Below, in pieces: positions 32,431-62,917 of a stretch of DNA of 64,000 nt. The DNA comes from Lepidodermella squamata (Eukaryota; Animalia; Gastrotricha): contig JBLDXI010000032.1 of assembly GCA_047495785.1 (NCBI GenBank), positions 4,402,001 through 4,466,000 on the forward strand. The letters are read 5' to 3'. Position 1 is the stretch's first letter. Each line of letters begins with the position of its first letter. The notes under the pieces are model-generated. The model was not told the DNA's origin. It ran no database searches and worked only from the letters and a program-made list of their open reading frames with translations. Made by a program: the position numbers and the translations under genes.

Positions 32431-33203
32431 TTAGAAAGCGAAGCGACCGAAGCCAAGGCCGTTACCGCCGAATCCACCGAGACCGCCGAGGCCGCCAAAC
32501 CTAAGACCGAATGGGAAACTGGTTATAAAACATATTAGATTAATATGTCATTCCGACATAGGCAATGAAAGATTCTCAAGTGCAAGTGCCGTCTTACTAC
32601 AACGTTAAATTTTGTTTTGTTTACCCGGCGTTGTTGCCGCCGAAGCCACCAGCGAGGCCACCGAAGTTGTTGGCACCACCGAAAGCACCGAGGCCATTTC
32701 CGAATCCGCCGAAGATACCGTTGTAGCCGTTGGCACCCTGGAGGCCGTTGAAGCCGTTGGCACCCTGGAGGCCGTTGAAGCCATTAGCACCCTGGAGGCC
32801 GTTGAAGCCGTTGAAGCCAGCATTGCCGCCCTGAAGACCAGTGAGGCCCTGGAGGCCCTGGAGGCCGTTGGTGTTGAAGTTGTTCCACGACTGGGCACCG
32901 TTGGTGTTGGCGACGTTGCCGAGGTTGTAGACCTGACCGTTGTTGTTAACCTGGCCAGTCGACTGGGCTGCGACGGGCTTGCCATTCTGGTTGCCAGTGC
33001 CGTACGAGGTGTAGTAAGACCACGAGTTTCCTTGAGGATTGCTGACCGACTGGGAAGTGATCGGAACCTGGAAACCGGCGGCATTCAGGGTTGGCGCGGC
33101 TGTCAATTGATAACGCCGTCATTCGAAATACTTCAATCGGCTATTTCCAAATCTTACCGTTGGCGCAAGCGACAGCGGCGAGAGCGATGACAGCGGCGTA
33201 CAT
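32431..33203 (-). CDS. Secreted Gly/Asn-rich protein A (GLQGANGFN repeats), ends GRFAF
   Basis: Exons 33203-33158 (signal peptide MYAAVIALAAVACAN), 33099-32625, 32500-32431. GT-AG introns with compatible phases. Confidence 0.85.
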
Positions 33204-34454
33204 TTCTGTTAGTAACTTTGCGTTAATCCGGCGTAAGGACCTAAAATTATTGAACAGGAAATCAGTTTTAGTGGTGAATGTGTTCTTTAGGTTTTGCGTT
33301 GGTTTCGAAGCTGTATGAATTTATGTTGATACGTTAAAGTGAAATTGTCTATATAGGCACCTGAGCATGCGCGGCCGGTGGTTTTAAGCTAGCCGAGCTG
33401 CGGCCGGCGTGTTATGCCCGTGTCAGTAGTTGTTTTTTGCTTCATTTTTTTCGCGGCTCGTTGTGATGGTGGTCAGCAGCGCACGGCTCGCCACTCGAGG
33501 GCTCGAGCCTAATGACAGTGTGTTTTCGATTTTTCACTCGCTCGACAAGGCTCGGCATGTCGAGCAAAGCTTTATAGTATCACAAAAATGTTCACGCGCA
33601 AATAACAGGTGCTAAGTTAATGCTGGCCGTGGCAATTTTCATCATAACTACAAATCGCACCGGGCATTAAATAATGGCAAGTTAAAACACGACAAGCGAG
33701 CGATCATTTAAGAAGATCCGCGTAGAAGCCGAGCCTTGCTTGATATTTTTTCCCGCTAATGAAGCTCACCCGCGCCAGTTGGGTAATCATAAGCTTGTAA
33801 AATTATAAAATTGAGCATAATTATCAACTACGCTGTCGTTGGCGTGAATTGATCAAATTACCACATGTGATGTTGCCGCTATCCGTAATTACAGATGCAT
33901 TGTTCCTAATAGCTCCGTGGTTAAAAACACTGGAGAAGAGAGAAATTCTTACAAAACCTCGTAAAAAACCAACGCTAAATCTAAAGCGTAAAAGGTAAAA
34001 ATCTGAAACAACTGGGGGACTGCAAAAATTGCTAATCCCGCTCCGAACGCTCTGGGATTCTGCAGCATTATTAAAAAAGGAGTTTATACAAATTTGAAAA
34101 ATAAAAGTCATAACGAGAACGGAACAAAAAATAGCCATAATGAATCTGCCAACATTTAGTTATGAGGCACCGCGCCCGATAACTGTCATCTGTATTGATG
34201 AGAGATATACAACCTGCAACTCTTCTTCACTCTCAGTTCGCTGGTAAACCATTGCAACTAATATGACGAAGACAATCAGAAACGTATATGTCAAAATTCA
34301 GGTTTTTTATTTTTGCCATTCCTTTAATTGTAAATTCTCGGAGCTTTAACGTCGTTCAGACAGTTGTAAAAAAACTAGCATTTCAACATGATTAAGCTGA
34401 TCGGATATATCAGTCAAATCTCCCGTTATATTGAGCTTTTAATTGCCGAAGTGC

Positions 34455-35152
34455 CTAATAGTAGCCACCTCGTCTGTAGTAGTATGGCGCAAAACCGTAG
34501 TAATGGTTGTATGGCGCACCCCAGCCGTAATTGCCATAACCGAACGGAGACTGGTATGCCTGTTGATGGTTGTTATTCGCAGCCGCACCGCCGTACGCTC
34601 CGCCATGCGCGCCGTAGTTATGGCCAGCCGCCTTGTGACCATCGGCTTCCGCGCCATTAGCTTCCCCGGCAGCGGCCTGGCTTCCCTGCCAGCCCTGGGA
34701 GCCTTGGGAACCGCCGAAGGCGAACCCACTGTCGTATTTGCCAGCTGCTTGCTCAGCAGCTGCGGAGGTCCGATCTGATGCGGCGAGAAGTGAAGCGGCG
34801 TGGTCGTAGCGGCCAGCCGCGTGCTGCGCGTCAGCATGCTGAGCACCCTGACCGAAAGCGCCGGCGGCCTGAGAGCCTTGCGAGCCTTGAGCGCCTTGAT
34901 AACCGGCATTGCCGAAATTCAGTTGGTGACCACCGCTTCCGAAGGCGCCTTGGTCAGAAAACGCACCGCCCTGAGCGCCACCATGGGTTCCTGCCGAATA
35001 GCTGCCGGCAGCTGCAGCGTTGGCGAGAGGGACGACTCCAGCTAATGAAATGAGAAAAGTAGGAAATAGTTATATCAACTCAAGGTTTTCTCGAAAATAG
35101 TATTACCTTTCACTGTTGCGATGAGTCCAAGCACAAGCGCAGCGATGTACAT
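34455..35152 (-). CDS. Secreted Ala/Gly/Gln-rich core-family protein B (its frame is missing from the ORF track), ends RRGGYY
   Basis: Exons 35152-35107 (MYIAALVLGLIATVK) and 35041-34455. Core AQHADAQHAAGRYDHAASLLAASDRTSAAAEQAAGKYDSGFAFGG. Confidence 0.85.
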
Positions 35153-35655
35153 CGTATCCTGAATTATTTTAGACATATATTAGACGAACCTATGATTATC
35201 GCCGGTAAATATTTCTGATCTTACCTGATTCTAGGCCGAAAATCACAATTGTGAAACTATAAAATGTTTGATGACGATGGTTATCTTCCATCTCACCGCT
35301 CTTTATAGCGCGCAGAGTCAAAATAACATTCGAAAACAACCAGCTTTTTCGAAAACATGTTTTGCTAACACCGCTAACCAGTTTTCAATTCGAATCATAT
35401 TGGCGCGCTTATGCCAATACTATTCCATATTATTGAAACACTAATTTCCTAAGGATGATCATTCAGTGATTACAACAGTGATAAGCCCGACAAAGATAGT
35501 TTAATGGTCTTTTTCCTTGGAATTTTGAATATAAAACATGGAGTGCTGCTTTGACGAGCTAATACGGCAGTATTGTCACCGTTTCGTCGGTAGCGCGATT
35601 CGTTGCAGCAGTTTTAACACTTGCTTTGCATTTCGTCGTAAATACCTTGTTTTGA

Positions 35656-35697
35656 GAGTGTAAATTTCAATGGGGGGCCCATTGAGATTTACCACTC
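35656..35697. repeat. Short intergenic hairpin
   Basis: gtaaatttcaatggg-ggg-cccattgagatttac with one mismatch, extendable by gagtg/cactc. Confidence 0.6.
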
Positions 35698-36584
35698 GCG
35701 AGCTACCTTATATTATGCGCGAATAAGCTAGTCTCTGCTATTGCTGTGTAAATAAAATGTTAATGACGGTTGATAAAAGAGATATGAAAAGGTTAATAAT
35801 AGCGCTAATTTATATAATTTCCCTATGAACAAACAGTGCCATCATGAAAATGCCATTGTTCGAAGCATAGGTTAGATGAAGGAACTAAGGAGAGTAACAG
35901 ATTACACAGCGGTCAAAATACATGCTTGGAGGATGAGAAGTTTCTTAACGAAAACGTCTTGAATGAGTTTCTCGGCGCTGCTATAACAAAGCAAATTGCG
36001 GAGGTAACATCGGTTCAAACAAGCTTTTGTACAAAATCAAAAAATTAAAAAAAATAGCCATCAACCGGTTACATCTTGAGTCTTGAACAATAAGCCTCTC
36101 TTTTAGCCACCATTTCTTTTAAGCCAAATCTATGATCAGTGATAAAAATCGACTCTCTGGAAGTTAGAAGTCGAGATGTCCCAAATTAATAACCTTTATA
36201 TTTAGGTATATGTTGGTTTGATTGCGTATAACTTTCTCATCCCATCACGGGTCTTCTCTGATCAGCGCCCGGTATCCAGTTCAAGGCCCATTGGAATACT
36301 TTAGACTTCCAACATTGTGGCAGTGGGTATGATTCAAAAAGAAACACTTCGCTTTGCAGTCTTTGCCTTGTGCAAATCTTTCATTTCAATCATCGACAAA
36401 CACCGAGACAAACAGTTGAATGTCATGAGTGGAAAAAGTGAGAAAGAACAGAATGATTTTTGACACAACAGATCATCAGTTTGAATTAAGTCACTGCCAC
36501 GTCGATAGTGGGATTAGGGTGCAAGGAAGGTGCAGAAGGGAACATTGTGCAGTTGTGTGGGGTCGGGATCGTTTGGCTGGCGCT

Positions 36585-37703
36585 TTAGAAGAAGAAGCGG
36601 CTGTAGCCGAGGCCATTGCCGTATCCGGCGCGGCCAGCACCAAGACCGTTGACGCCATTGAGGCCAAGGCCGTTGACACCGTTGGCACCGTTGAAGCCAG
36701 CGCCGTAGAAACCAGCGTTTCCGTAACCAAGACCAGCGCCATAGCCGAGGCCAAGACCGTTGACGCCATTGACGCCAGCAGCACCAAGACCGTTGACACC
36801 GTTGAAGCCAGCGGCACCAAGACCGTTGACGCCATTGACGCCGTTGAAGCCAGCGCCGTAGAAACCAGCATTGCCAACACGGCCAGCGCCGACGAGGCCA
36901 GCACCCTGGAGACCAAGACCGTTAACGCCAGCACCCTGGAGACCAAGACCGTTAACACCAGCACCCTGAAGACCAACACCGTTGAGGCCAGCACCGTGGA
37001 TACCGACGCCGTTGAGGCCAGCACCCTGGAGACCAACACCGTTGAAGCCAGCAGCGTTTCCGTAACCAAGACCAGCGCCATAGCCGAGGCCAGCACCGCC
37101 GTTGTAGCCAGCGAAGCCACCGTAGTAGGGAGCGTAGACCTGGGGAGCAGCCTGGGCCTGCTGGGCAGCAGCCTGGTTGGCGCCCTGAGCGGCAGCCTGG
37201 TTGAAGCCCTGAGCACCAGCGGCCTGCTGGGCACCCTGTTGACCGGCAGCCTGGGCAGCAGCCTGCTGGGCAGCGGCAGCCTGGGATCCCTGAGAGCCCT
37301 GGGCGCCCTGAGCACCACCGTAGGCGAATCCGTTGTCGTAGTCACCAGCGGCCTGCTCGGCGGCAGCGGAGGTGCGCTCAGAGGCAGCGAGGAGGGAAGA
37401 GGCGTGGTCGTAACGGCCAGCAGCCTGCTGGGCATCAGCGTGCTGGGCACCCTGGCCGAAAGCGCCGGCGTGTTGGGATCCCTGGGAACCCTGAGCCTCC
37501 TGAGCAGCGGCAGCCTGACCGGCAGCCTGAGCGGCAGCGGAACCAGCAGCACCCTGGCCGAATTGAGCGCCAGAGTTGGCAGCATCCTGAGCACCCCAAG
37601 CGCCGTTGGCGGCACCAGCAGAGCCTCCCCAACCGCCAAGACCGCCGATGAAGTTGGCGTTGGCGGCGGCGAACAAAGCGCAGACGATGGCGACCTTGTA
37701 CAT
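36585..37703 (-). CDS. Secreted core-family protein C (372 aa, single exon) with long GLNGV/GLQGAG tail, ends SRFFF
   Basis: ORF from MYKVAIVCALFAAANA. Conserved core. TATA box at 37786-37792. Confidence 0.92.
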   Translation of the reverse strand: MYKVAIVCALFAAANANFIGGLGGWGGSAGAANGAWGAQDAANSGAQFGQGAAGSAAAQAAGQAAAAQEAQGSQGSQHAGAFGQGAQHADAQQAAGRYDHASSLLAASERTSAAAEQAAGDYDNGFAYGGAQGAQGSQGSQAAAAQQAAAQAAGQQGAQQAAGAQGFNQAAAQGANQAAAQQAQAAPQVYAPYYGGFAGYNGGAGLGYGAGLGYGNAAGFNGVGLQGAGLNGVGIHGAGLNGVGLQGAGVNGLGLQGAGVNGLGLQGAGLVGAGRVGNAGFYGAGFNGVNGVNGLGAAGFNGVNGLGAAGVNGVNGLGLGYGAGLGYGNAGFYGAGFNGANGVNGLGLNGVNGLGAGRAGYGNGLGYSRFFF

Positions 37704-37754
37704 GGTTAAGGTGTTCAAAGGATACTAACAAATAAACACTTAGACGAGGTTGTG

Positions 37755-39360: not shown

Positions 39361-40432
39361 TCAGAAGAAGAAGCCGCGGCCATAGCCAAGGCCGTGGACA
39401 CCGTTGTTGCCCCAGTTCCAGCCGTTGCGAGCATAGCCAAAGCCAGGGTAGCCGAAGCCGAAACCGTTGCCATAGCCGTTGCCGTAGCCCAATCCGTAGC
39501 CGTGGCCGACGAGGCCAGCACCGAAGTTGTTAGCCTGACCAGCGTTAGCACCGAATCCAGTAGCCTGGGCGCCAGAAGCCTGACCGCCGACGAAGTTGCC
39601 GAAGCCACCGAAGCCAAGACCAGCACGGCCAGCTTAGGAATAATCGATTCAGATTAATTATTGACTCGAAAAAGAGAGTTTTCGGAAACTTACCACCAGC
39701 ACCGTAGGCTCCGAAGCCAAGACCATGACCAAGGCCAAGACCGACACCGCTGTTGTAGCCAAGACCAGCATGACCAGCACCGAAGCCATTTCCGTAGCCG
39801 AGGCCGTAGCCGCCGAATCCGTGACCACCGAAGCCAGCGAAGCCACCGTAGTAGGGAGCATAGCTGACCTGAGGAGCAACCTGCTGTTGCTGAGCAGCAG
39901 CGTGGTTGGCACCCTGAGCGGCAGCCTGGTTGAAGCCCTGAGCACCACCAGCTTGGTGAGCACCCTGTTGGCCAGCAGCCTGGGCAGCGCCGAAGTGGCC
40001 AGCGGCACCCTGGGATCCCTGAGAGCCCTGGGCGCCCTGAGCACCACCGTAGGCGAATCCGTTGTCGTAGTCACCAGCGGCCTGCTCGGCGGCAGCGGAG
40101 GTGCGCTCCGAGGCGGCGAGGAGGGAAGCGGCGTGGTCGTAACGGCCAGCAGCCTGCTGGGCATCGGCGTGCTGAGCACCCTGACCGAAAGCGCCGGCAT
40201 GGTGAGATCCCTGAGAGCCCTGAGCGTGTTGACCGGCAGCAGCCTGAGCGGCAGCCTGGTGGCCGGCGGCTCCAGCGGATCCCTGGCCGAAATGAGCTCC
40301 ACCGTTAGCAGCACCCTGGGATCCCCAAGCGCCATTGGCAGCACCAGCTGCACCTCCGAATCCGCCGAACGCTGGGACGAAACCAGCGTTGGCTACGGCC
40401 AAGACTGTTGCCAAGACAGCGGCGGTGTACAT
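39361..40432 (-). CDS. Secreted core-family protein D (His-enriched), ends GRGFFF
   Basis: Exons 40432-39694 and 39632-39361. Signal peptide MYTAAVLATVLAVANA. Conserved core. Confidence 0.9.
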
Positions 40433-41710
40433 TTCTGTATAAAATAAATGGTTAGGTATGTATATTCAAGAGATCATTAAAGTAAGCGGGTCGAACCTTT
40501 CTTGAAGGAATGTATAGTGAGTTGAGTCGAGAAGGCAAATGTGACTTGAGAGGATGGCCGCGGTTGGCTGGCCTTTTATAGCCGGCCAGTCGAGCGGCAG
40601 TGCACAAGCCGTCGCAAGTCAGAGCCGAAGCCGCGCCAAGGGCTCAGCTGTGTCACTTCCAAACAACACAACTCGAGTCGAATTACCTCGCACATCAAGC
40701 ACATTCGAAAATTTGATCCACAGCCACACCGTTCAATCAAATTACGCCAAACAATAGCCAATTTTCAGCCCAGAATTAACCGAAGTGACGAGGTTTTTTT
40801 ATTTCAGATGTTGTCAACAGTGACAGCCATGCGATTTTTTCGAGCAGATACGGCCAATGTACCGCGGAACGCACCGAAAAGCGATTCTCATCGGCGACTA
40901 CGGTGAGCAAGTGTGAAAACAACAAGGCTGTTATTTTGGTAATACGCGGCGAGTAATAGGCACAACACAGCGCGCGCAGTGGATCAACTATTTTTTATTG
41001 CCTTGTTGTTTGTAATTGAAACAGCCTGACGAGCAGTCGAAATTGCGCGCGTGTGCACCTTGTCAATGCGAGACATGTTTTTAGCCTATGCATTTTGCAT
41101 GCATGAGGCAAGTGCGAAATTTAGTTTTTCGTTTTTTGTTTATCAACAAATGTAGAAAAGGTTGTAGGTATTATATGTATATTGTGTGAGACGCTTCGTA
41201 AGGACAAGCGCTACACCCTTGGGATAAGCGCTGTTACATCTATTAGCACCTTACAGCCCAGTGCGACACGAAATCTTGAACGCGTCGAGTGCGATACATA
41301 AAAGTTGTATATTAAAAAGTCGAGTATATGTGATCATTGCCAAACAGAATTTATTCCTTCTTTTTGATCGCCGTTTCGGGCGAGAAAAAATACGTTCATC
41401 ATCATTTCCATGTTGATCTCATATCGTCCACAAGACACGTTCCGGTGCCGTCCAAAAAGAAAAAATGTTTTGGGACCTCAGTAAATAAAAATAGTAAGTG
41501 CATGGGAGAACATTAGGAAATCCAAGTGATCAGTGCAGAATTCATGCACTAGTGCAGAAAATCGAACGCGCTAACGTTAATGTCTTTCACATTGGCAGTG
41601 ATCGGTTAGCGGGTTGATTTGAGCGCCGGTTTTCCGCATTTCATGCATGAATCGAGTTGAAGTGCAGGAGTTGTGTTAGGGGCCTAGGGGAGTGCTGATA
41701 ATCGCGTGAT

Positions 41711-42749
41711 TTAGAAGAAGAATCCGCGGCCATAGCCGAGGCCAAGACCGTTGACGCCATTGACACCATTGAAGTTCCAGCCGTTGTTTCCGTAGCCGAA
41801 ACCAGCACGGTTGACACCGTTGAGGCCATTGAGACCGTAGCCCCAGCCAAGACCGTTGCCCCAGCCAAGACCAGCGTTGTTAGCCTGACCAGCGTTGGCA
41901 CCGAAGCCAGTAGCCTGAGCACCAGAGACGCGGTTGCCGACGAGGCCAGCGCCAAGACCGTAACCGGCGACGTTACCAGCACCAATGCCAGCTAAAGGTA
42001 GAATTATATTTAGCTACCATTCAGTGGCGATAGGTGATTCGACTTTACTTACCACCGAGGCCATAGGCACCATTGCCCCAACCGTTTCCGTAGCCCCATC
42101 CGTTACCATAGCCAAGACCACGACCAGCAAGGCCGTTGTAGCCAGCGAAGCCACCGTAGTAGGGAGCGTAGTAGACCTGGGGAGCAGCCTGGGCCTGCTG
42201 GGCAGCGGCCTGCTGGGCACCCTGGGCGGCAGCCTGGTTGAAGCCCTGAGCACCAGCGGACTGCTGGGCACCCTGTTGACCGGCAGCCTGGGCAGCAGCC
42301 TGCTGGGCAGCGGCAGCCTGGGATCCCTGAGAACCCTGGGCGCCCTGAGCACCACCGTAGGCGAATCCGTTGTCGTAGTCACCAGCGGCCTGCTCGGCGG
42401 CAGCGGAGGTGCGCTCCGAGGCGGCGAGGAGGGAAGCGGCGTGGTCGTAACGGCCAGCAGCCTGCTGGGCATCAGCGTGCTGGGCACCCTGGCCGAAAGC
42501 GGCAGCCTGTTGCGATCCCTGAGAGCCCTGAGCGTGTTGACCGGCAGCAGCCTGAGCAGCAGCCTGGGCAGCGGCAGATCCAGCAGATCCCTGACCGAAG
42601 TTGGCACCACCGTTGGCGGCACCCTGGGCACCCCAGGCACCGTTGGCAGCTCCAGCGGAGCCTCCCCAGCCTCCGAGGCCTCCGAAGTTGCCGAGGAACT
42701 GAGCGTTCGAGACGGCGAGGACGGCGCAGAAAACAGCGGCGGCGTACAT
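41711..42749 (-). CDS. Secreted core-family protein E, ends GRGFFF
   Basis: Exons 42749-42053 and 41991-41711. Signal peptide MYAAAVFCAVLAVSNA. Conserved core. Confidence 0.9.
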
Positions 42750-45600
42750 TTTCTCAAAACTGATTTGATTTAACAGAAGAAATCTTCAGTCGAATAGTTA
42801 CGTGCGCAAGGCTGCTTTTTTATACCCTCGCCCAGGTGTGAGAAAAAAACGTTCGGTCTTTCTCGAAGGATTGTTGCCACGTGCAAATAGGCCAAGTTCT
42901 GCGGTCGTCTATTCGCAGATCTGTTTATACTTCTTTGATCAATTTGTATTGTCAGGCTCTTCTTTTGCCATGCTCACGATATCCCACCCTTCCTTATCCG
43001 ATTGTTGTTCTTAAAATATGCGTGATTATTTCGGAGAATTCCGAGAGGAAATTCTGCACGAAACTTTCGAGCAGCTACGGTTGGCCGAAAAGCAATTTCC
43101 ATTTTTTACGTGGCGGTCATTTTTTGCGGCTATCGCTCTCGTTCGAGCGGCAGTCGGCTGGCGAGAGGCAGAACACCTGCTTTTTTGCTTTTATGACTGT
43201 TTAGTTTTCTCTCGCGCCATTCGCGACGATATGCTCAAGGCCTGGCTTTGTTTTATGAGCATACGTGCTTCAATGGTCGGCTGTTTCTAGGCCGCCCTCG
43301 CCATGAATGCTTCGTGCTACAATTGAAGGCGACTTCTCACTCGCACTTGTGGCCATTTTTGTAGCCGTGTGCTTGGACACGTCGCCGTTTTGCATCCAAG
43401 TTTCCCACACATCATAGTTCGAATAATCCTCAAAATAAATGTTCAAGGTCAATGCCGAGAAATTTCATCCGAGTCGCCATAAATACGATGATGGATCAAT
43501 CCACCGAGAAAACGAAAATCCGTTGTTCAGTTGCTTTCAGCTTGATCGAGTTGTACATGCAAAATCAGATATAAAAGTTACCAACCAATCGCATCAATCT
43601 TGATTGGTAATACATTGTATCTACGGTATAAAACAATTTATAAGCATTAAAAACCGGCGATCTCGCGCGCAAAATGGATTACAAATGAGTTATTTGAATG
43701 GAGATAAGGAGCCAGTTTGATGTTGAAAACTACCATGAATATAAGCTTATACAAATGTTTGGGCTCTATTGTACGTAAGCTCAAACTGAGAAAATTCGAC
43801 TCATCCATTGGACGGAGCCTATATTTACTTATTTCGCTGCTGCGCAAAGTCGGAAGACGGCCCTTGGTATAATTTGTTACGAGGGGCGTGTTAGTATTCG
43901 AAAATCACCCTCATTAGCCAAGAGCTAATAAAGAAGTTGGTGACAAGTGACAAGCAATTGATTTCGACTGCGCTTATACTGTTGGTTAGCCGAAGAAACA
44001 TTTATTGATAGATTTATCATATCAGGAAGCTTGAAACATTCATTCTTTTTAATAAAAGGTTGTATATCTTCTTATAAGCCAGAAATTGTATGCATTAAAA
44101 TAATTGCAAACGCAACCTAAGGTCACCCGTGAAGCAGTAATACCCGCAGCCTTTGTTGTGACCAACACTGGCCAACCGCTTGTAGCAATACACGCATTCT
44201 TGCTGGCCGCTCGCCGGTGCCAGTGTTAACTTTTTTGATAAGCTGAATCATCTCGAACCGGCTAACTTGGTCATGCTGGCATATTTTTCGAGCTTGCTCT
44301 CGCCAAACCTGAGGCACTAACTAAATTAGCGCAATTCAACAATTTGACATTCGTGAATGGACAATTTCATATTATATCTTATTTTTTCTCAAAAAGCACC
44401 TATAGCGGATTCTCCTTTCTAAATTCAGCGGTTCAGATTTGTGAGCAAAGAAATTGCAAATGAAATATGGATAGACAGTAGACAATATACCTATTAAGCA
44501 GAAATTATTACGAAATTATTTCTTTATCAAAAAAATCAGAATCCTAGAACATCCGCTAATTTCTTCCCGAAATATTCATACCGCTCTATTTGGCTTCAAT
44601 GAATAAAGAATAAAGCTAGTACACCTACCTAAAGTGCGACAAGGGTTCTAGAATTGTGTATAATTGATATAATTGACAAGGAAATGGTCTTCGTGGCCAA
44701 TGGTGGCAAGATGCGTGGTGTGGTCATTCGAACTTTCGTTGTTCATGGATGTGCTGAGGAATGGCTGGAGCTCTGAAGCAGGCATAATGTCACAGAGATC
44801 CCAGGGCATTAAAGAAATAAAACATACTTGAAATTCTGCAGCGTTTGGATTTCGCAATGATTTGAAGAGAATTCTTTAGTTAATTACATTACTCAATAAC
44901 ACAGCATTCGTGGCTACAGCTACATACATTCAAATTGCTTGGCAAATAATCATTTTTGCGCGCCTGGTAACTTCAGCAGGAATTATATAATCCTTTCATG
45001 ACCAAAATGTCCTCCATGGGAAATTATTTCATATACTTACTTATCGTCCTCTTATGACCATATCATAACTTCATGAAAATTGCGTGTTTCAGGGACGTGC
45101 TGGATGGCCAGCTATCAGCTTCCGGATCGGAATACTCGACGGCTAACAACTCCTTGCCTTAATATGGATTCGAAAATTGTATTACAGAATATTGCTCCCC
45201 AACCATCGAGCGATAATTCCGCTAATTGAAAGTCCACACTTTCCGCAATTTTGGTGGATTTATACGCATGGATTTTTGGGACTTTAGAGCGGAAACTAAA
45301 ATAACATCAGATATGAATAGGAAGGCGGATTTTGGGGCAAATCAACCACCCCTCGATGACTGCTGTGTACACCGATGGGTAAATCGGTGTATTATGGGTT
45401 GTGAAGTAACGAACGAATTTTGCCAACGAGCCACTTTTATTGCGGACCCTTTAATCCGAGTTTCAATGTAAAAAAATAACACTTCGCAGTCAGACGGTTC
45501 CGCGAGTATAAGCTTCCATTCCACTGTTGTTTCCTCCGAGAAAGATCGATGATAAGCAATTCGTCTATTTTATCTAGATCACTATATCAGCTTGAGTGCC

Positions 45601-48794: not shown

Positions 48795-50583
48795 GGTAGT
48801 GTGGTGTATGAGGCTTGAAGAAAGAGTGATTTGAATGTTTAAGACTCTGAGTTAAGACCTGAATACATGGAAAAATTCCACCGCTTATATAGCCAGTGGC
48901 CGCGGTGTGGCCACCTTCCATACGTCTAGAAACAACCATAGGTGCTCGGAGTGGTTGTCATCGTTCGATTTACCTCGAAATAACTGTAAATGTCTTTCTT
49001 TACAATAAATTTTTAATGCTATGCTTCGAAGCATCGCCGATAGCCCAGCTCAATGTTTGCGATGCCCATGTTTATCTCCGACTAAAAACTTCATCGCGCA
49101 TTTACTCCGGCGTTGCGCCATTTAGTCGAGTTGCGACGGTAATGGGCGTTATGGTTTTTTTTTATGTGATGAGATGTTATCTGTTCGCTCATGCCCACAT
49201 ACGTGTAATTATCTTTTTGTTATATTTCAACCAATGCACGCAATGGTCATCATCACGGCTACGTGTCACTTGTTGCCTGCATTCAACCGACCACAGCATC
49301 TAAGTACTACCCAAGAAGCGCCACTGATGGGCAGCGTCGAAAAGTCTGGAAGCTTTTTCTTGCTTTTCATGGCGCAATTATGCTTGCCAAAGCCTATGGC
49401 CTGGTCTTCCTGGACATTGTCGGTTTTCGACCGTCGCAAATAATCTCCTGTTTTAAAAAATACTGCAATTATCTGCAAGTGTTGCAGTTTGTACGAATGT
49501 CATGTCAGATGTGTCAATCAGCTGCCTTTTGCAAACCATGTCGAGTAATATCGGGCGATTGGGCCATATTTTACGATTGCGGTTAAGCTCCGCTTTCTAT
49601 CCCCAAGACGTCTGGGCCCCTTGGCTCAGCTCCACGGAGAGAGAGAGGGAGAGAGAATGTTTACAATTATCGGCCGTTGAATCAAAAAACGACCACGCTA
49701 ATATAGTAATTGCTCGGATGAATTTGACATGCGTTGACTATTATGAGGACTTTTTGGAGCAAACCTACACTCCTGAGCCTTATCACGCGTTAGTTTGATC
49801 GTTGATCAATCGAACGTCTTGTGACAGCTTGTAACGGATAAAAAACGGGTTATAACCATGACAATCCAAGGGTTATTAGATTGTGCTTTTATTTTAATTC
49901 TTCACATGGCTCCGGTCATGGTTGGACTATATCTCTTAGCAGCGGCGAGAGGTGTCGAATACGGAAAGGAGCGCTAAATGTTCATTGTCGTCCAAGTGAT
50001 TTAACATTCATATCAATAGATCTACTCGTAATACAAGCCTTAGAATTCCTACACATGTGCGTGCATTCAAGAAAAAACCGTAAAAAAGGTTTGCTAGCTA
50101 GGAGGATTAAGGTAAGCCTGACTTATGACGATTAATAAACCGTTTTCATTTGGTTTTTTGTTGGTCATTTGGAAAATAATTATGAGTGAAAGTCGAGAAA
50201 GAAAGGCGATGAATCAGGAATTTGACCGCCTTAACAAAAAGTTAAAGTTAAAGTTAAGTGACCTATTCTGTCACAATTTTGCACAATTTTTTCGGGGCCA
50301 GATTTAGGCTAACCTAAGGCTTCCCAGTCCGAGAGTCCGGAGGATTCGATGAATGCATCGCAACTTTTCATCATTCATCTCCCAGCATTACAGAGCCGAA
50401 TATAAAACGTCGACAAAAACTCAGTTATTTCTGAACGTGCCATTTGTGTCATCTTTATTTTATCAGTCATCGTCACATTTTGTAAAAGTCTTTCCAATAA
50501 GGGTATACACATGAGGTTATCTATGAGTCTATATCTATATTTCACCCTGACCAGCCACGCTAATTAACATGAGATGCTGAATC

Positions 50584-51753
50584 TCAGTAAGGACTGCGGA
50601 ATCCGTTGCGGATACCCCATTGCCCGTTGACAGGTGGTGCGATGGGATGGATTCCCCAGTTTTTCACACCGGCGGGCACAGCGTAACCAGCAGAGCCAGC
50701 GCGCGCACCAACATTGTTCAGTTGCACACCGTTGCTGCCAAGGTAATTGGCACCGCCGTAGATGTTGCCGCCATATCCATTGACGCCGCCGTAGTAGCCG
50801 ATAGGTGATGGTAAGCCTTGGTTGACGGCGTATCCTGGGTTAGCTGAGAGGTATTGCGTCGAAGCGACGGGAGCGAGGTACAGATTCTGTTGGCTTGCAA
50901 CGGGGGCTGCGTAGCCGTAGCCGGCGACTCCGCCATAGCGAGCTGCTCCAGCGGAAAGCGGCACTTGCGCAGCGTAGCCACCTACAATTAGTAAGATGAA
51001 GCTTCAATTAGCCGTATAGTGTAAACTGTCTTACGGTAGACAGGGGCGGCATAATAATTCGCGGCGGGACCTTGGCGGACCTGCTGGTCGTTCACCTGGA
51101 ATTGCTTGCCACCTTCCTCAGCGCCGTTGCTCGCAGCAGCCTGGAAGCCTCCTTCCCCAGCCCCGCTAAAGCGACCAGCACCAGCTTGAGCGCCTTGAGC
51201 GCCCTGGGCTCCTCGGGCACCACCGTAGGCAAAACCATTGTCATAACTGCCGCCAGCCTGCTCGGCAGCAGCAGAGGTGCGCTCAGATGCAGCCAAAATG
51301 GATGCTCCATGTTCATAACGTCCAGCTGGCAAAAATTAAATTGGTAAATTTATTGCCCAGATTCAAAAACAACTAACCGGATTGATCAGCACCAGCTCGC
51401 TCGCCACCATTTGAGTAAACATAAGCTCCTTGTAAAGAAACCCAAATAAATTAAGTTTTAGATGAATCATATAATTTTGCCCACCTTGCGAGCCCTGTGC
51501 ACCTTGGGATTGTTGTTGCCCCACACCGTTGCCTTGAACCTATACGTAGATATAGCGGATATATGCATCGCTAAAAATTGTGTTTTGAACTAACACGATA
51601 GCCAGCGTCGGCCGCCGCGGTGTCAAATGCGTGTTGGCCGGCATCGACGGCAGCTTGTTGGCCAGCGACGGCTTGTTGTCGAGGGATGAGGTAGTATTGA
51701 GCGTTTGCAGCAGCAAACAGCCCTACGACGATAAGTGATGTCGAATAATACAT
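50584..51753 (-). CDS. Secreted core-family protein H (divergent, 5 exons), Tyr/Pro-containing tail
   Basis: Exons 51753-51595, 51539-51485, 51428-51378, 51325-51035, 50981-50584. The spliced product restores AGRYEHGASILAASERTSAAAEQAGGSYDNGFAYGG with family spacing. Confidence 0.82.
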
Positions 51754-53580: not shown

Positions 53581-54481
53581 TTAGTAGGCGAAGCCGTAAC
53601 CAGCGTAGCCAAGACCGTTGACGCCATTGAGGCCAAGGCCGAGACCGTTGACGTTGTTGTAGCCACGGGCGTAGCCAGTCTGGTAGCCATAGCCAAGACC
53701 GTTGACACCGTTGAGGCCAAGACCGAGTCCGTTGACGCCGTTGACGCCGTTGACACCGTTGACGCCGTTGAGGCCAAGACCGTTGACGCGGTTGAGGCCG
53801 AGGCCAAGACCGAGTCCGTTGACGTTGTTGACGCCGTTGACGCCGTTGACACCGTAGACGCCGTTGACGCCGTTGACACCGTTGAGGCCGAGGCCAAGAC
53901 CAAGACCGTTGACGTTGTTGACGCCGTTGACACCGTAGACACCGTTGACGTTGTTGACACGGTTAAGACCGAGGCCAAGGCCAAGACCGTTGACAGCATT
54001 GACACCGTTGACGCCATAGACACCGTTGTTGAGGCCGAGGCCATTCAGACCGTTGAGGCCATTGAAGCCAAGACCCTCGCGCTGACCAGCCTGAGCGCCG
54101 AAGAGGCCAGCCTGGGCACCAGAGGCCTGGTTAAGACCGAAGCTGTAAAATTAAACCGTTTGTTAATATTAAAGCTTGGAATAAGAATGCAGCAGTATGC
54201 TGACAAAATCATATTCATGTGCCAAACCATGCAAAATTGGCCGATAAATTGTTAGATCAAAAAAACGATAAATTGTCGAACCCCGAGTAACGTCATGATG
54301 AATTTTGCAAGTTTTCCATGATTTAACACAATCAACCAAGTACTTACTTGGTGTAAAGGGGAGCATAGCCATGGCCAGCACCACGAACACCGAAGTTGTT
54401 TCCGTAGAAACCGTTGTTAAGACCAAGGATGTTGGCCTGGGCATAGCCGAAAAGGGCGACGGCGACGAGGAACTTGTACAT
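53581..54481 (-). CDS. Secreted (Gly-Val-Asn)n / GLGL repeat protein I, ends GFAY
   Basis: Exons 54481-54348 (MYKFLVAVALFGYAQA...) and 54142-53581. The true frame is absent from the ORF track. Confidence 0.85.
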
Positions 54482-55455: not shown

Positions 55456-56256
55456 TCAGTTGCGCCCTGCCTGTCGTCTATCAGAATTCCAATCCCGTCT
55501 CCTGGTGTTGCTGGGTTTCCGATTGTTATAATCATCGTCATCGCCTTCGTAGTAATAATCATAGTCGTCGTCGTCGTTGTCCAACTGATTGCTTCCGCGC
55601 CGACTATTCTGATCAGTCCTGCTTGCGTAACGATCGTTGCTATTGGAATTTCTCCTGCTCGAACTCGGAGAATTGGAATTTCTGCTCAAAAGAAACTCCA
55701 TGAACTGTTCCCACAATTCTTGGGGATTCGTCGGCATCCAACTGACTCGATTAGTCGTTTGTGGTCTTGAGGTACTGGTGGTTTGCGGTTGTTGAGGGGG
55801 TGGTGGCGGTGGCGGCCGTTCAGGTCTCCGCGACCGGTCGCCCCGCCTCCAAGGCCCATATCCCTCGTCTTCACCTTGATCATTATCATCACCGAACCAC
55901 CGTCCGAAAAAGCGTTCATTGTTATCGTTATTCCGTGATTGCGGCCGTGCCACAGTTGTTGTAGGTACAGTGGTTGCAGGCGCTGTAGTAGTTACAGATG
56001 CGACCGTGGTCATCTTCACGGTGGTGCTAGAGGTGGGCGTATCTCTTGACTGATTTCTCGTCTGAACAGTAGCCGCTTTTCCGCGATTGCGTCTATCTCG
56101 TTGGTTGTATTCCTCATCGTCGTCCTCATCGTCGTAATAGTTGTAATTTTGTTGCCATCTTCTACTTCCTCGGTCATGTCGCTGGCGTTGGGCTCTCGCA
56201 ACAGCAGCTATAAACAGCAAGCCGAACAGAGATAACACTAATTTATTATAATTCAT
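55456..56256 (-). CDS. Secreted disordered Asp/Arg/Asn/Thr-rich protein J
   Basis: Signal peptide MNYNKLVLSLFGLLFIAAVARA, acidic Tyr-Asp blocks, Thr-rich segment, poly-Pro, one amphipathic helix (ELWEQFMEFLL). Confidence 0.8.
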   Translation of the reverse strand: MNYNKLVLSLFGLLFIAAVARAQRQRHDRGSRRWQQNYNYYDDEDDDEEYNQRDRRNRGKAATVQTRNQSRDTPTSSTTVKMTTVASVTTTAPATTVPTTTVARPQSRNNDNNERFFGRWFGDDNDQGEDEGYGPWRRGDRSRRPERPPPPPPPQQPQTTSTSRPQTTNRVSWMPTNPQELWEQFMEFLLSRNSNSPSSSRRNSNSNDRYASRTDQNSRRGSNQLDNDDDDYDYYYEGDDDDYNNRKPSNTRRRDWNSDRRQAGRN

Positions 56257-56837: not shown

Positions 56838-57492
56838 CTAGTTCCAATCGTCACCGCGACCCCAGCGGTTTTGACGGTTTCCAGCTGGCGAACCGTAGCT
56901 TCCGCCACGACGACCACTTGGGTTGCGGTTATCATCATAGCCACCGCGGCCCCTTGATTCATTGTCAGGGCGCTCCCAGCCCCTGCGACCAGCAGGTTGG
57001 CGGTCGCGCTTGGCTTGCTCTTTGCGCTGTTGCCACTTTTGATACTGCTTGTACTCATCGGCGAAGCGCATGTGAAGCCATTTAAGAAACGGTTTCATCC
57101 ACGAATCGTCATCGGCTTTCTTAGTTTCATTCTTCGCGGTTCCATTAACGGAATGCCCGGCTGTTTCGTTACTCGGCCTTGAGTGACGTTTCTCGCCTCC
57201 TTTGTTGTCGTGACCACCGCGATTACGCCTGCGGAATTCAAAAAGTAAAAAAAGAGTGGATCATGAATCAGTTCGTTCTGGGTAAAAAAAAAACCCACGG
57301 GCCATCGTCGCCGTCATCATCGCGGTTACGACGCCAGTCGCCACTTGGCTTGCCCCAACCACCTCGAGCTCCACGGCCCCAATCATCATCAGAAGCTTCA
57401 TCTTCGTCATCCCAATTGCGATTTCTATGACCGCTGACTTGAGCTAGTTCGATGAGTACTAGCAGACCAGCAACAACAAGCCAAAGTTTCAT
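56838..57492 (-). CDS. Secreted Asp/Arg/Gly/Trp-rich protein K
   Basis: Exons 57492-57299 (signal MKLWLVVAGLLVLIELAQVSG) and 57228-56838, joined in frame. Confidence 0.8.
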
Positions 57493-57696
57493 TTTCAGAT
57501 ATCAAGATGATTTGAAAATTCTATAGCTAGGAAGAAGACAAATAAGAAATTATAATGTGACAATGATCATAGCAAAAGGAGTGCAATATATCTAAGCGCG
57601 ACATTTCCCAGCGAGTAGAACAGGCAATTGAAAGGAGTTAGTATGCGGAGTAATAGTTAGTTTGCCTTACAGTAGGCGCCTGCCTGCTCCTTCAGT

Positions 57697-57810: not shown

Positions 57811-58158
57811 TGCCGGATACTTTGAAAGCTCAAAAAATCACCAAGTTCAAATTGCGGGTGCTCATCTCTTTATTTTGCGCTATAAAAATGCATAGTTTAG
57901 AAAGGGTGTGGTCAATCTCAGAGATTGATATCGCAATACCGAAGAATCAATAAATCAAGTGCAATTTCCCAGAAACTTAGAAAAACCATCATGGTTCACA
58001 ATAAAAGTAAGTTACTTTCGCAACTTTCCGTGCTACAGAAAGATACAAATGGCGATTGAATTCGGCTTGCGAAAACAAAGAAAAGGGGAGGAATATTGTC
58101 AGTAAATAGATAGCTGTTCGTTTGCTGGGCTTTGGCATTAATGGCCTGAGGTCACAGT

Positions 58159-58912
58159 TTAGTTATCACCCCAACGGCCCCATTGTCCGCGACCACCGCG
58201 ATTCCAGCCTCCGTGGCCACCCTCACGGCGATTGTTCCAGCGACCTCCACGGCCTCCACGGCCTCCACGGTGGTCCTTGCGGCCCTTTCCTTCCCATTTG
58301 CCACCCCTGCGACCTCCACGGCGACCCTTGCCCCACTTGCCGCCCTTGCCGCCTTTACCGCCCTTGCGTCCACCGTGACGGCGGCCGAATGCACCATGAC
58401 GGCCTCCGAATGGGCCCATGCCGCCGAATCCACCATGACGGCCACCGAATTGGCTCATGCCACCGAATCCACCATGACGGCCTCCGAATGGGCCCATTCC
58501 ACCATGGCGGCCACCGAATCTGCCGGGACGGCCTCCGAAGGGACCTGGGAATCTACCATGGCCTCGTGAAAGACCTTTCTCATCGGAATCGTCCTATTAC
58601 AGAATGATAAATCTCAATTTTACAGCCAAAATATCAAGACACCTGACTTACATCGTCATCATCGCTGTCATCGCTGCTGTCACTGCTGTCGCTGCTATCG
58701 CTATCATCGTCGCTATCGTCGTCGTTCCTATTGCCTCCACGACGGCCACCGAATCGACCGCCGAATCCTTTACCGCCAAATGGACCGCCCCATGGGCCAC
58801 CGCGGCCAACTTCGTTCTTTCCTCGCCATTCGTCGCCTCCACGACGACGTCCTGGCTCAGCCAAGGCGACTGCGAAGAGCGCGACAAGGATAGCAACTAC
58901 GGCAAAGCGCAT
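58159..58912 (-). CDS. Secreted block polyampholyte L: RGG block, D/DSS tract, GPFGGRHGG repeats, K/R-Gly tail
   Basis: Exons 58912-58652 (signal MRFAVVAILVALFAVALA) and 58593-58159, phase-0 GT-AG intron. Confidence 0.85.
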
Positions 58913-60088
58913 GTTGGAATTAGTAGTAGATTGATAGGGATATTCTCGATGAGACTGGTTTGAATTCCGCTCATTTCGCTCGGCTTATATAGCCTCTGTG
59001 CTGGGTCGAATCCCATTCTGCCACCCATGAAACTTTGGCTGCGGCAAGCGTCGTGTGATTGCCATAATGCACGGGCAATCAACATCACAAGGTAATATTG
59101 AAAAAATGCATCAAATGTGCGTTGAGCTACATTTGTACGAATTCAGTCTACTGACTTAAGATTGATTGCCTTATTTATTGATTTGTTCGATCTGAGATCG
59201 CCGATTGGTGAGATCTTCGCTTTTCTGGTAGCTACGGTGTCGTGCTAATCCCCTGCGCTTCTTACACGCCACAACCCGGTTAAACCCAACGTTGTTTTTC
59301 GCAGTCAACCGATTTTTTTCTGTATCCATGTGATGATCTCCCACGTCATAAGTTCTTTTGTGTTCCTTGATCATTATTAAAATTACCAGGGAAAAGGTAG
59401 CTAATTGCTTGATGGCACTACACCTACGAGAGCACGACAGATGCTCAACCTTTCGAGCCTTTACTCTCGTGCTCACTAGAAAGTAATTAGTTGAAACCGC
59501 ATGACTCTCGTGTATATGCTAAATTTTCAGCTGCCAGATCAACCACTGAGAAGCATAAGCTTGTAGCAAAATTTGATTGTTGCCTGCTTGCTACAATTTG
59601 CGAACATCATTCCAGCTAACTTATCCTTTTTGCTACCAAATGGACGCATTCTACTCTACTTTACTCTCTTCTGATTTCTGAGACTGCCAGATAACTTTCT
59701 CCTGTCACCTGTAGCTTTGCAGTCAGAACGTAACTTGACTCGGAAGGCAGCATTGTAGATATTATGTAGAAGTAACAGATAATACATCAAATCTTGCCTT
59801 TTAATTCAATCACTTGCATTTATTCAATGCTATCATTCAATTTTGAATGGCAGTGCTAGTTTTTGCGCCAAGTCATGCGTAAAATCACGATCCCCTGACG
59901 AGCGGATACGGATAGATGACCAAAATGCATTGTATCAAAAACATCGAAGAGCCTAAACGCGGATATTGATGAAAATCTACACGGCGAAATAACTCCTAGG
60001 ATATGCTTATGCATATGATCATCTTAAAATAAAGTAACAACGGGTATTTCGTCGGACATATCATTGATGAGTGGAGCAGAGTCAAGGC

Positions 60089-62917
60089 TTAGAAGCCGTT
60101 GTAGTACGGCGCATAGCCACGACCAGCACCGGCAACAAGGGGACCAGCGACAGCACCATTCAGGCCAACACCGTTGTTGAAGCCGCCAACAGGGCCGTAG
60201 CCGTAAGAGCCGTAGCCAGGGTAAGCATAACCTCCAGCGTCGGCGTAACCGTTTCCATAACCGGTTGCTCCTCCTTGAGCTGCGCCGGCAGCTTGCTGCT
60301 GACCGCGAGAGCCCTGGCGGAAGGCACCTTGGCCTACCAAAAGTGACGAATTATTGTCTGATATTAAATTAATGTGAGAATCTAATTACCCTGGGCAGCT
60401 GCGCTACCCTGAGCAGCCTGAGCGCGGCCGAAGTTGGCAGCGGAGGCACGGCTGGCGGCGGCGGCTTGCGCACGAGCGTGTAATTCTTCCTCGGCGGCAA
60501 GAACGGTCTGCTCCTTGTCGTAGCCAGCAGCCTCGTGTTCACGACGACCGGAAAAACGACCTGCGCCAAACTGGGCAGCTCCTTGTTCACCAGCGGAGAA
60601 CCCACCTTGAGCAGCCGACGACTGTTGACCCTGAGCCGCGGAGCCCTGAGCAGCGGCGGCAGCAGCGGCACCATTAACTTTACCACCGGCTTGACCGGCA
60701 GCCTGGCCAGCGGCTTGGGCAGCAGCACCTTGTTGACCATTGAAGCCGTAAAAGCCTGGGGCTTGGAAACCATTCGAAGCAGCGCCGTTAGCGGCAGCAT
60801 TGCCACCGAAACCCGCAGCCGCGGAACCAGCAGCCTCTGTAGAAAAAAATATGTTGTTATTGAAATAACGGTAAAAGGGTTCAGCGTCCGATATAGGCTA
60901 TAGTGAGTGGAATTAAAAAGGAGCGCAAGCCAAAAGTCAAAGCGAAACCCTTATCAGAGTTTCGACACTGATTGCCTCTGATCATTCATAAAAACTTGGG
61001 GTGCGCGAGAATGTCTAATTCTGCTCCCTATTAAACGAGCAAGAAACGCGGCCGATAGAGCACGAATCTCGAATTGATTAAAAATGCTACTAAAATGACA
61101 AGGTCAAACTCTGCAAAAACCCGAGGAAATTCCGAGCTCAAAATATGTTTGCAAAGCCTCGAACAGTTCCTTGCAATCTTCTCAGTGAATACGTCGGGGT
61201 TAATCTACATAGCCGCAGATACCGAACAGATGCGAATATAATGCGAACAGATAAATAATGTTCTTCCGCTTCTTGGTCGGGAACGGCTATGGGCTTAATG
61301 TGGTCAACTCTATTTATATTTTTCCATGAAACAAGAAATTATCTGAGCTATTAAGCGAGTTCTTCAAGCATAGATGTGATGAAATATCTGAAGACTCTTT
61401 TCTCGCCTCAATGTTTTCTGTGGTTTCCAACTCTGGTACCGAGCGTCTCCCAGCAATGCTCAAAACCCGATGCTCTCTTCATGATACGAGCGAACCAACG
61501 GTCGACATAACGTACGTACGATGACCATTAGATGCTAATGATCGATTTGTATACAATCCCTAAAATGTGATCCGATGGCTGAATGTCTTCAAGCCATTGC
61601 GAGCAGTTAAATAAATACTTTGGGACTACTAGTCACTGGCAATAAGAAAATAGGACAGTTTCAAATCAGGAACATATTTCAGATTCCGGGCAAGTCGAGG
61701 AAATGTTATGGACCTGTTCTATAAACGACCACTGAAAACCTCGTGTCTGTAATATCGACGAGACAACGAACTAGATTGAGATTTGATTAGATAATTGCTA
61801 CTACTGAATCGATGCTTGGAATTCCCGTAAGCAGGTACATTTAATAGGCATAATGAGCAAATGTAGCGACAGTCATTATTCCCGGTGGATCCAATAAATG
61901 ACTGCAAATCAGCATAATGCATCCATGACTAATATCTCTGGAAGGTGCATATCGTTAGCATCGCGCCAAAACAACGACTTTAGTATTTATCGATTTTTAT
62001 GGAAAGTATATACGTTCGACCAGTAAACTTAAATTCAAATTTTGATCATTACTATCAGTGTTCAAAGAAGCCGAACGTGCTTAATCATTACGTTGAGCTC
62101 CTTGAAGTTCGATCGAATGAGTCATCAAAGTGGTTGTCTTGGCGCGTCGCTTGCGATATCTGTTCTAGTTCTGTCTTTCCTTGATAATAATTTCCTCTAC
62201 GTAATTTCCCTCATAGATTAGTCCTGGCCTATTAATTGAACGTGATTAAAATCTACACGCCCTAAGCTTGACAGCGATCTACAGGGGCGATAACAAAAAC
62301 CTTGGGCAGCAAATGCTCGCTAATAATGGTTAATTTCTAAAATCTATATGAGGAGAAATTAAAACAACGATATTGTAAGTAAAAACTATGTTCACTTACG
62401 CTGGCCTTGGATGTTAGAGTTTTGACCCTGGGCGAATCCAGAGCCCTGTCCCTTCTGGAATCCACCGGCAGCCGAATTGCCATACGAGCCAGCAGCAGCG
62501 GTCAACGAGCCAGCCTCAGCGACCTTGTCACGTACACCAAACGCCTGGTCACGGTTGTAACCGAAAAGCACTGACTGGCGGCGGTAGAACGAGCCAGCTT
62601 CAGAAGCAGCGGCTTCGCGATCACCAGCATTGCCGTATTCCTCCTCCGCGTTGCGACCGTTGCGAGCGTCGGCGTAGCCAGCACCACCTTCAGATCCCTG
62701 ATCGTAGCCAGCCGATCCGTCGTAGCCCTGGCCGTAACCCTGGCCGTAATTGCCAGCATAGCCATTTGCGGCATTCCCACCGTAAGCAGGACCGTACAAG
62801 GAACCAGCTAGTATAATCAAAGACTTTAGATGTTGGAGGAAGCGGAAGGCATTGTCGACGATGGCACTTACCGGCCGCGTTCGCGATCAAAGCGCAGACA
62901 ACGACTGCAGTGTACAT
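60089..62917 (-). CDS. Secreted protein M with two divergent copies of the family core, ends APYYNGF
   Basis: Exons 62917-62872 (MYTAVVVCALIANAA), 62807-62400, 60836-60390, 60333-60089. Phases are compatible across the 1.56-kb intron (c|ag = Gln). Confidence 0.75.

Follow-up and report, generated by a model that had tools for sequence, protein, structure and literature searches.

In a 64,000-nucleotide stretch of the genome of the gastrotrich Lepidodermella squamata, which we call the window, a gene cluster is probably centred on a lineage-restricted family of secreted structural proteins that expanded by tandem duplication. Among the explanations considered, this one best accounts for the locus as a whole, including three genes for highly charged proteins that it treats as separate from the family. 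The window lies on contig C32 (JBLDXI010000032.1) of a 121.2-Mb assembly in 151 contigs, and this assembly is the genome searched throughout. A scan for methionine-initiated hydrophobic N-termini, together with open-frame analysis, placed 13 genes on the minus strand between 32621 and 62917; we numbered them g1 to g13 by rising window coordinate. A first-pass annotation had described 13 consecutive minus-strand genes with signal peptides, and inspection of the N-termini by eye agrees. The genes can be called consecutive because the other open frames in the interval lack Pfam matches, intergenic frames of at least 80 amino acids included. On alignment, seven of the 13 (g2–g8) form one orphan family, which we name the AQ-core family; the three charged proteins are encoded by g10–g12.

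We defined an AQ-core protein by a signal peptide, a core flanked by QGSQGS (GRYDH..LLAAS..TSAAAEQ), a YAPYYGGF hinge, a Gly-X tail and an aromatic C-terminus. All of g2–g8 conform to this definition, with core-profile E-values between 1e-29 and 2e-20 in a genome-wide profile search. In the full-length alignment, the signal peptide is of a conserved M-Y/F-x-A-x-V...ANA type, and the N-terminal region of about 170 residues is rich in Ala, Gln and Gly. The seven proteins share a 72-residue block that aligns without insertions or deletions between QGSQGS-type repeats, and the centre of this block is an almost invariant segment of about 35 residues around AAGRYDHAASLLAASERTSAAAEQ. A Pro/Tyr hinge (YAPYYGGF; PQVYYAPYYGGF) separates the Ala-rich part from the Gly/Tyr part. 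The first-pass annotation had pointed to block designs with a proline boundary; the boundary is real and is also conserved in relatives from outside the genome. Beyond the hinge, a Gly-rich tail of widely varying length leads to a conserved aromatic C-terminal motif of the GLGYGRGFFF type. Two kinds of unit, Gly-X-Asn and Gly-X with Leu, Tyr, Ala or Phe as X, build up the tails, and aromatic residues are interspersed; the tails contain 33–39% glycine, and a strong period-2 spacing of glycine (GLGYGAGLGYG) is mixed with period-3 spacing (GVNGVNG). The earlier description in terms of G-X-N triplets thus does not hold as it was worded. Histidine-rich paralogs are also found (g4, g6 and one gene of a second cluster on contig C7). 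In addition, the tails of g4, g5 and g6 (39364–39630, 41714–41989 and 45604–45890, minus strand) have in common a non-repetitive sub-motif, LVGNRVSGAQATGFGANAGQAN, which suggests a second small conserved module within the otherwise variable tail.

Genome-wide searches, one with protein sequence and one with a profile, returned 16–17 matches to the AQ-core, corresponding to at least 16 core genes. Besides the seven in the window, seven co-oriented genes form the second cluster (C7:2.803–2.825 Mb; 2802859–2824882, minus strand), and C43, C17 and C55 carry one gene each, that on C55 adjacent to a weaker core-like gene that no search scored. Several members of the C7 cluster have long Gln/Pro/Val linkers (VQPVAVQQ) ahead of the tail. 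The adjacent C55 genes (1317265–1319319) encode two very divergent relatives of 201 residues each, rich in Trp, Asn and Gly, in which the signal peptide is of the family type and the core, SYSRDASVLAASENTRAAAG, is degenerate.

Relatives of the family were also found outside the genome. In a word-indexed search of 5.8 billion protein clusters, the core matched one protein, P0001 (E 1e-11 over the core), which is 52% identical by BLASTP and has the same signal peptide, the same core and a Gly/Tyr/His tail. An exhaustive hidden Markov model search of 1.84 billion representatives recovered only P0001 and a second protein, P0002 (E 9e-10). A third, P0003, is a near-identical member of the P0001 cluster, and the three together represent two distinct sequence clusters; P0001 and P0002 derive from ENA metagenome assemblies and have no protein names attached. 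Three further contigs, from JGI metagenomes (L023–L025), contain complete single-exon genes with cores 74–80% identical and with the full AQ-core architecture: the hinge is present, and the C-terminus is of the GFFF or FFGY type. The presence of the full architecture in these outside relatives shows that AQ-core is a real family, conserved in several species. From the data at hand, the family appears to be limited to the source lineage and these environmental relatives. The ESM Atlas neighbours of g7 reached only chance-level similarity (0.79–0.80) and all belonged to arthropod cuticle or Gly-rich clusters, a lead in composition only.

No known family accounts for these proteins. When the exons were scanned, with multi-exon genes searched exon by exon, none of the 13 genes matched a Pfam family above threshold. 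The claimed lack of R&R, peritrophin and ZP domains and of true collagen was confirmed in these scans: no exon matched R&R (PF00379), peritrophin (CBM14) or ZP, and the mature chains contain no cysteine from which a six-cysteine chitin-binding domain could be built. The chorion central domain (PF01723) was likewise unmatched, at E ≤ 1 in ten segments from g1, g3–g8, g10 and g13 and at E ≤ 0.1 or 0.01 in the segments taken from g2, g9 and g11–g13. Collagen (PF01391) was rejected for g1, which scored 24.8 bits against a cut-off of 27.2 and whose GLQ/GAN/GFN triplets lack proline. We also rejected a type I antifreeze or late-embryogenesis-abundant-like protectant, given that periodic threonines and charged 11-mers are missing and the tails are hydrophobic. 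The AQ-core had no match among PDB sequences. A refuting match of the core to a well-characterised family was thus sought in Pfam, in the PDB and among the 1.84 billion representatives, and none was found; the core can still be called undescribed.

The core is held constant by selection. Its median dN/dS (ratio of nonsynonymous to synonymous substitution rates, from pairwise Nei–Gojobori estimates) is 0.18, and dS reaches approximately 0.9–1.7 between distant paralogs (for example g2, g6 and the C43 gene). The low ratio, together with the high dS, indicates that the invariance of the core reflects purifying selection and not only recent gene conversion. To describe its structure we relied on AlphaFold2. 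Predicted from the single sequence, g5 exon 1 is helical over residues 2–187 at modest confidence, with a disordered tail, and the predicted local distance difference test (pLDDT) score peaks at 84–86 on the core. With a family alignment of 15 sequences, only helices 41–57 and 71–104 remain; the second, about 34 residues long, is the core (pLDDT 66–71), and the rest of the chain falls below 50, the signal peptide excepted. The core is thereby predicted to be a single alpha-helix of about 34 residues within an otherwise disordered protein. The sequence of this helix is mirror-like around a Leu-Leu centre: among 18 mirrored pairs, six are identical and three are charge-complementary (Asp/Arg and His/Glu among them). 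This mirror score was equalled by 3 of 5000 shuffles at the Leu-Leu centre, and the score over all 72 residues by 20 of 5000 at the same centre. Such symmetry is compatible with a helix that pairs with itself in antiparallel orientation.

Three further genes may be related to the family. Two of them, g1 and g9, have no core. The g9 chain (Gly 32%, Asn 21%, Leu 16%, Val 14%) matches the tail of g3 with a composition-adjusted BLASTP E-value of 3e-10, and a genome search found the g3 tail as its sole genomic relative. The g1 chain (27% Gly and 19% Asn, with no cysteine in the stretch tallied) gave a weak match to the same tail (E 6e-4). In g13, the exon at 60388–60840 aligned weakly with the core profile in hhalign (probability 32%, E 4.7e-4); the exon at 62395–62820 showed no core match by the same method, and the genome-wide core profile search did not recover the gene. 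We tentatively regard g1 and g9 as core-less, "tail-only" derivatives of the AQ-core family and g13 as a divergent relative. These assignments are tentative because similarity between low-complexity sequences is weak evidence of homology.

The genes at the centre of the locus carry signals of strong expression. Strong codon bias had been attributed to all 13; it is present in six, with preferred-codon shares of 0.84 (g1), 0.92 (g3), 0.87 (g4), 0.90 (g5), 0.93 (g7) and 0.95 (g9), but is not general. The codon use of these six is more one-sided than that of the actin and EF-Tu-type GTPase (elongation-factor family) genes of the same genome. The share is 0.66 in g2, 0.69 in g6 and 0.65 in g8 (0.65–0.76 for these three and g13), 0.60–0.65 in g11 and g12, and 0.32 in g10, which is lower than in the neighbouring ion-channel genes (0.44). 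A TATA[AT]A box lies 75–155 nt upstream of the ATG in g1–g9 and g12 and is absent from the 200 nt upstream of g10, g11 and g13. By our own estimate, about two of the 13 genes would have a box within 200 nt by chance; ten do, in keeping with the earlier statement that most have one. The TATA boxes of g1–g9 and the one-sided codon use of six of these genes suggest expression in bulk. In g1, g2 and g4, where the box stands about 150 nt from the ATG, a stretch bounded by GT...AG lies between the two (33204–33360, 35153–35310 and 40433–40585, minus strand), which suggests short introns in the 5′ untranslated region.

Cysteine was tallied over the coding stretches, that is, over the mature regions and over any signal peptide encoded by the same exon. 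Within them, g3, g5, g6 and g7 each have one cysteine, which belongs to the signal peptide, and none was found elsewhere. In g1 and g13 the signal exon stands apart and, read by eye, contains one cysteine in each case. The mature chains are thus free of cysteine, as had been reported.

The three remaining genes, g10–g12, had been grouped by the first-pass annotation as a class of polyampholytes interleaved with the others. The classes are not interleaved: read along the minus strand, the order is g13, a g12–g10 block, g9, a g8–g2 core block and g1. Nor is there a polyampholyte family. Neither g10 and g11 nor g11 and g12 show significant similarity, and the class consequently reflects a common composition. 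A single exon encodes g10 (55456–56256), a secreted Arg/Asp/Asn-rich chain with Thr-rich and poly-Pro stretches; it has no paralog in the genome and no relative among the 5.8 billion protein clusters, and looks like an unrelated orphan. The two-exon gene g11 (56838–57492) encodes a secreted Asp/Arg/Gly/Trp polyampholyte, part of whose interior is non-repetitive (SWMKPFLKWL...). Its second exon has three paralogs of 62–65% identity, one on contig C26 and two on C25, each beside a g12-like gene; no relative of g11 was found outside the genome. In g12 (58159–58912, two exons, TATA box at −79), a basic Gly/Arg block is followed by an acidic Asp/Ser run, FGGRHGGFGG-type repeats and a Lys/Arg/Gly end. 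Its second exon has weak paralogs at the same C25 and C26 sites and one more about 9 kb away on C26 (568811–569755). At each recurring pair (C26:577218–579183; C25:2287380–2289329 and 2290933–2292592), the two genes lie on the same strand in the order g12-like, g11-like. The core-family searches gave no AQ-core match on C25 or C26. Because the pair recurs there without one, its linkage to the window cluster is not conserved. Judged by these comparisons, g10–g12 are best described as neighbours and not as demonstrable parts of an AQ-core material, with g11 and g12 forming a separately duplicated pair.

What g11, g12 and possibly g10 would then do is a separate matter. They may be precursors of secreted bioactive peptides, either of an antimicrobial type rich in Gly, Arg and His or of a signalling type, with acidic pro-regions, and not building materials at all; we consider this possible, though tentative. 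The g12-like paralogs are polyproteins of 200–335 residues in which three to five near-identical Gly/Phe/Arg/Pro units are separated by Asp/Ser-rich acidic spacers of the DRDDDSSDSDEE type with basic residues at the borders, and they look like repeat-peptide polyproteins. The units of g12 itself (four or five of the FGGRHGGFGG type after the Asp/Ser run) point the same way, with a weaker unit/spacer pattern than in the paralogs, and the codon bias of g11 and g12 is only moderate. Among invertebrate antimicrobial peptides, cationic repeat peptides rich in Gly form a known class. On the other hand, the processing sites in g12 and its C25/C26 paralogs are not canonical: classical dibasic or Gly-Lys-Arg amidation sites are not evident at every unit border. 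Furthermore, no relatives of known function were found, and matrix proteins of adhesive and mineralising kinds also contain Asp/Ser-rich runs beside basic blocks rich in Gly.

We now return to the tandem family of structural proteins and to the material it might form. Secretion signals, lack of cysteine, Tyr/Phe/Trp "stickers" set in Gly-rich spacers, expansion in copy number, TATA promoters and one-sided codon use are together the marks of bulk building blocks, and we infer that AQ-core proteins are secreted, associate with themselves and form a material. In the mechanism that we propose, the conserved helix would serve as a self-association module that sets the register, possibly by pairing antiparallel around its central Leu-Leu, and the Gly/aromatic/Asn tails would condense and pack to make up the bulk of a solid extracellular material. 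As cysteine is absent, cross-links could instead form through tyrosines, which would be open to oxidation. The core-less g1 and g9 would act as tail-type "filler" chains. The most likely product is a non-chitinous, non-collagenous body cuticle with its scales, and eggshell is the main alternative. A more specific proposal is that gastrotrich cuticle and scales are built mainly of AQ-core protein, as an exoskeleton of protein alone, without chitin or collagen, in which short antiparallel helices set the register and Gly-X and Gly-X-Asn tails solidify; this we put forward only as a tentative possibility.

Several known systems resemble the AQ-core family in design. Squid suckerins, Nereis jaw proteins and mollusc shematrins, which form hard protein-only materials, are likewise cysteine-poor block copolymers, with an ordered block rich in Ala that a Pro boundary sets off from an amorphous block of Gly/Tyr(/His). 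None of them is related to AQ-core in sequence, and suckerins differ in having many alternating Ala-rich (beta-sheet) and Gly/Tyr modules; in our alignment such alternation is absent, and each protein has one core (predicted to be helical), one hinge and one long tail. The low-complexity cuticular proteins of arthropods (CPF/CPFL, CPLCA/CPLCG and Gly-rich types) are also secreted, rich in Ala, Gly and Tyr and encoded by large tandem families, with a short conserved motif, a conserved C-terminus and AAPV/YAP-type motifs, but they show no homology and belong to another phylum, the AQ-core host being a spiralian gastrotrich. The coiled-coil silks of bees, ants and hornets and the ootheca proteins of mantises are secreted Ala-rich helical proteins from small tandem clusters that use small residues for helix packing; these proteins, however, have heptad coiled coils of about 200 residues, whereas about 34 residues of the AQ-core chain are predicted to be helical with the family alignment (residues 2–187, at modest confidence, in the single-sequence model) and most of its mass is Gly-rich tail. 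The matrix proteins of mussel byssal threads are generally known as secreted matrix components and are dominated, like the AQ-core tails, by Gly, Tyr and Asn, but they share no conserved core or sequence relationship with the family and come from another organism and structure. As membership was established in none of the systems compared, the AQ-core family is new, although of a functional kind that is already known.

A further parallel bears on the choice between cuticle and eggshell. The A and B chorion proteins of silkmoths are small secreted proteins synthesised in bulk from tandem gene clusters, with a conserved central domain and variable Gly/Tyr/Leu repeat arms. By analogy, the AQ-core family could build the shell of the egg, in particular the thick one around resting eggs, in place of the body cuticle. 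This chorion-like design, with its conserved central domain, Gly/Tyr repeat arms, tandem clusters and codon bias for bulk synthesis, favours the idea, and gastrotrich eggs are very large relative to the animal. Yet there is no chorion match in Pfam, and nothing in the sequence sets an eggshell apart from a cuticle. Chorion proteins are Cys-rich with a beta-sheet central domain, whereas AQ-core is Cys-free with a core predicted to be helical, and there is no sequence relationship; chorion genes, moreover, are arranged in divergently transcribed pairs, whereas the genes of the cluster described here are all co-oriented. We consider the eggshell a rather doubtful destination for the family.

The first-pass annotation had gone further and read the 13 genes as the building kit of one secretion. 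The reading fits g1–g9 and probably g13; its extension to all 13 is not supported by the evidence on g10–g12. If all 13 were co-expressed for a single secretion, the polyampholytes might be charged partners that coacervate with, or cross-bridge, the neutral Gly/Ala proteins. The arrangement of the locus lends this some appeal: the 13 genes follow one another in a single orientation with no recognisable gene between them, all are predicted to be secreted and free of cysteine, g12 has a TATA box, and g13 lies beyond the polyampholyte block, which places the block inside the span of the family. Against it, g10 has neither codon bias nor a TATA box, three further copies of the g11–g12 pair lie on C25 and C26, contigs without a match in the core-family searches, and no common promoter motif was found. 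A composition screen of 57 kb around the seven core genes of the C7 cluster also revealed no polyampholyte-like open frame that stood out. A single 13-gene kit is therefore unlikely.

It is less likely still that the AQ-core family works in soluble form, as a protectant or lubricant, or organises lipid layers (a secreted hydrogel, a desiccation protectant or the membrane-like layers of the epicuticle), and does not form a hard material: disorder is predicted for most of the chain, the Ala/Gln region is polar but carries no charge, and Ala-rich helix-forming segments do occur in lipid-associating and protective proteins, but the tails are the hydrophobic/aromatic Gly-X repeats typical of insoluble materials, and the conserved aromatic C-terminus and near-zero charge outside the core favour aggregation.

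A number of observations weigh against a tandem family of secreted structural proteins, or against parts of the mechanism proposed for it. The signal peptides of all 13 genes were judged by eye only, and an exact look-up of four window proteins in a collection of 15 billion proteins found none of them present. In the 500 nt ahead of each of the 13 genes, k-mer counts compared with shuffles revealed no common motif beyond TATA, and so give no evidence of co-regulation. The likeness of g1 and g9 to the AQ-core tails may be compositional instead of homologous. Confidence in the AlphaFold2 models is low overall (mean pLDDT 48–64), and Ala-rich low-complexity sequence is prone to over-prediction of helix. 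The conserved residues of the core are spread over every side of the helical wheel; this all-round conservation is compatible with burial in a larger assembly and fits equally well with a non-helical or a ligand-binding role. The mirror test was made post hoc, and when any centre was allowed the 72-residue score was matched by 291 of 5000 shuffles, which is marginal. Finally, cuticle, eggshell and gland secretion cannot be told apart from sequence alone.

If the tandem family does supply the main block of the cuticle, the cuticle would be a material that evolved independently of other animal cuticles, and the family would be the first component of the gastrotrich body wall known at the molecular level; our literature searches turned up no account of the molecules that make up the cuticle, scales, eggshell or adhesives of gastrotrichs. 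If it forms scales or a shell, an independently evolved Cys-free design of helix plus Gly/aromatic tail would be added to protein-only hard materials such as suckerins, jaw proteins, chorion and coiled-coil silks. In either case, the family offers concrete, clonable candidates: its conserved domain is well defined, it numbers at least 16 genes and it has relatives in environmental samples, and the design is short enough for recombinant production. For co-expression work at the locus, it matters that the supposed 13-gene kit becomes one expanded family with unrelated neighbours.

The individual family genes, all on the minus strand, vary in exon number and tail. Three are single-exon genes: g3 (36585–37703; 372 aa), with a long GVNG/GLGYG tail, an ...SRFFF end and a TATA box at −89; g6 (45601–46386), which is divergent and His-rich; and g7 (47793–48794; 333 aa), with a GLGYGRGFFF end and a TATA box at −97. 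Two exons make up g4 (39361–40432), whose tail contains His, and g5 (41711–42749), whose 72-residue conserved core lies at approximately 42315–42530. The divergent member g2 (34455–35152; E 2.4e-30 in the protein search) has a short Tyr-rich tail, and g8 (50584–51753; E 5e-22 in the profile search), with at least three exons, has a YAAPVA/Pro-containing tail like that of the metagenome relative P0001. Of the genes outside this core set, g1 (32621–33203) has two exons and combines a signal peptide of the family type with a core-less chain, rich in Asn, Gly and Gln, that ends in GLQGANGFN-type triplets; g9 (53581–54481), also with two exons and no core, consists almost entirely of GVNGVNGLGLG-type units; and g13 (60089–62917) has four exons, a family-type signal peptide and the weakly core-like segment described above. 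The splice junctions, read directly, define short GT-AG introns of about 55–60 nt that keep the frame. Longer introns are present in g9 (about 330 nt) and g13 (about 1.5 kb); in the latter the splice phases fit, and a second signal exon looked for inside the intron was not found. The idea that the 13 genes are artefactual open frames was rejected, as splice sites, stops, paralogs and outside homologs support real genes.

Long stop-free frames of 240–430 residues also run antisense to core-family genes on the plus strand (36429–37709, 39725–40447, 41985–42773 and 47559–48818), and off-frame open frames occur on the minus strand. We rejected both as genes and attribute them to the repetitive, biased coding sequence, which is rich in GCT, GCC, GGC and GGT. 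Nothing in the window resembles human DNA. In the wider surroundings, TTAGGG tracts of 24–78 nt occur at C32:4486633–4488092, about 21 kb past the end of the window and about 16 kb from the end of the contig; their closeness to the contig end makes the gene cluster subtelomeric. Upstream of the cluster, the plus strand of the window (1–23300) carries three tandem, paralogous multi-exon genes for voltage-gated cation channels of the four-domain Ca/Na-channel type (Ion_trans, PF00520; E 2.7e-50 at 10515–11897).

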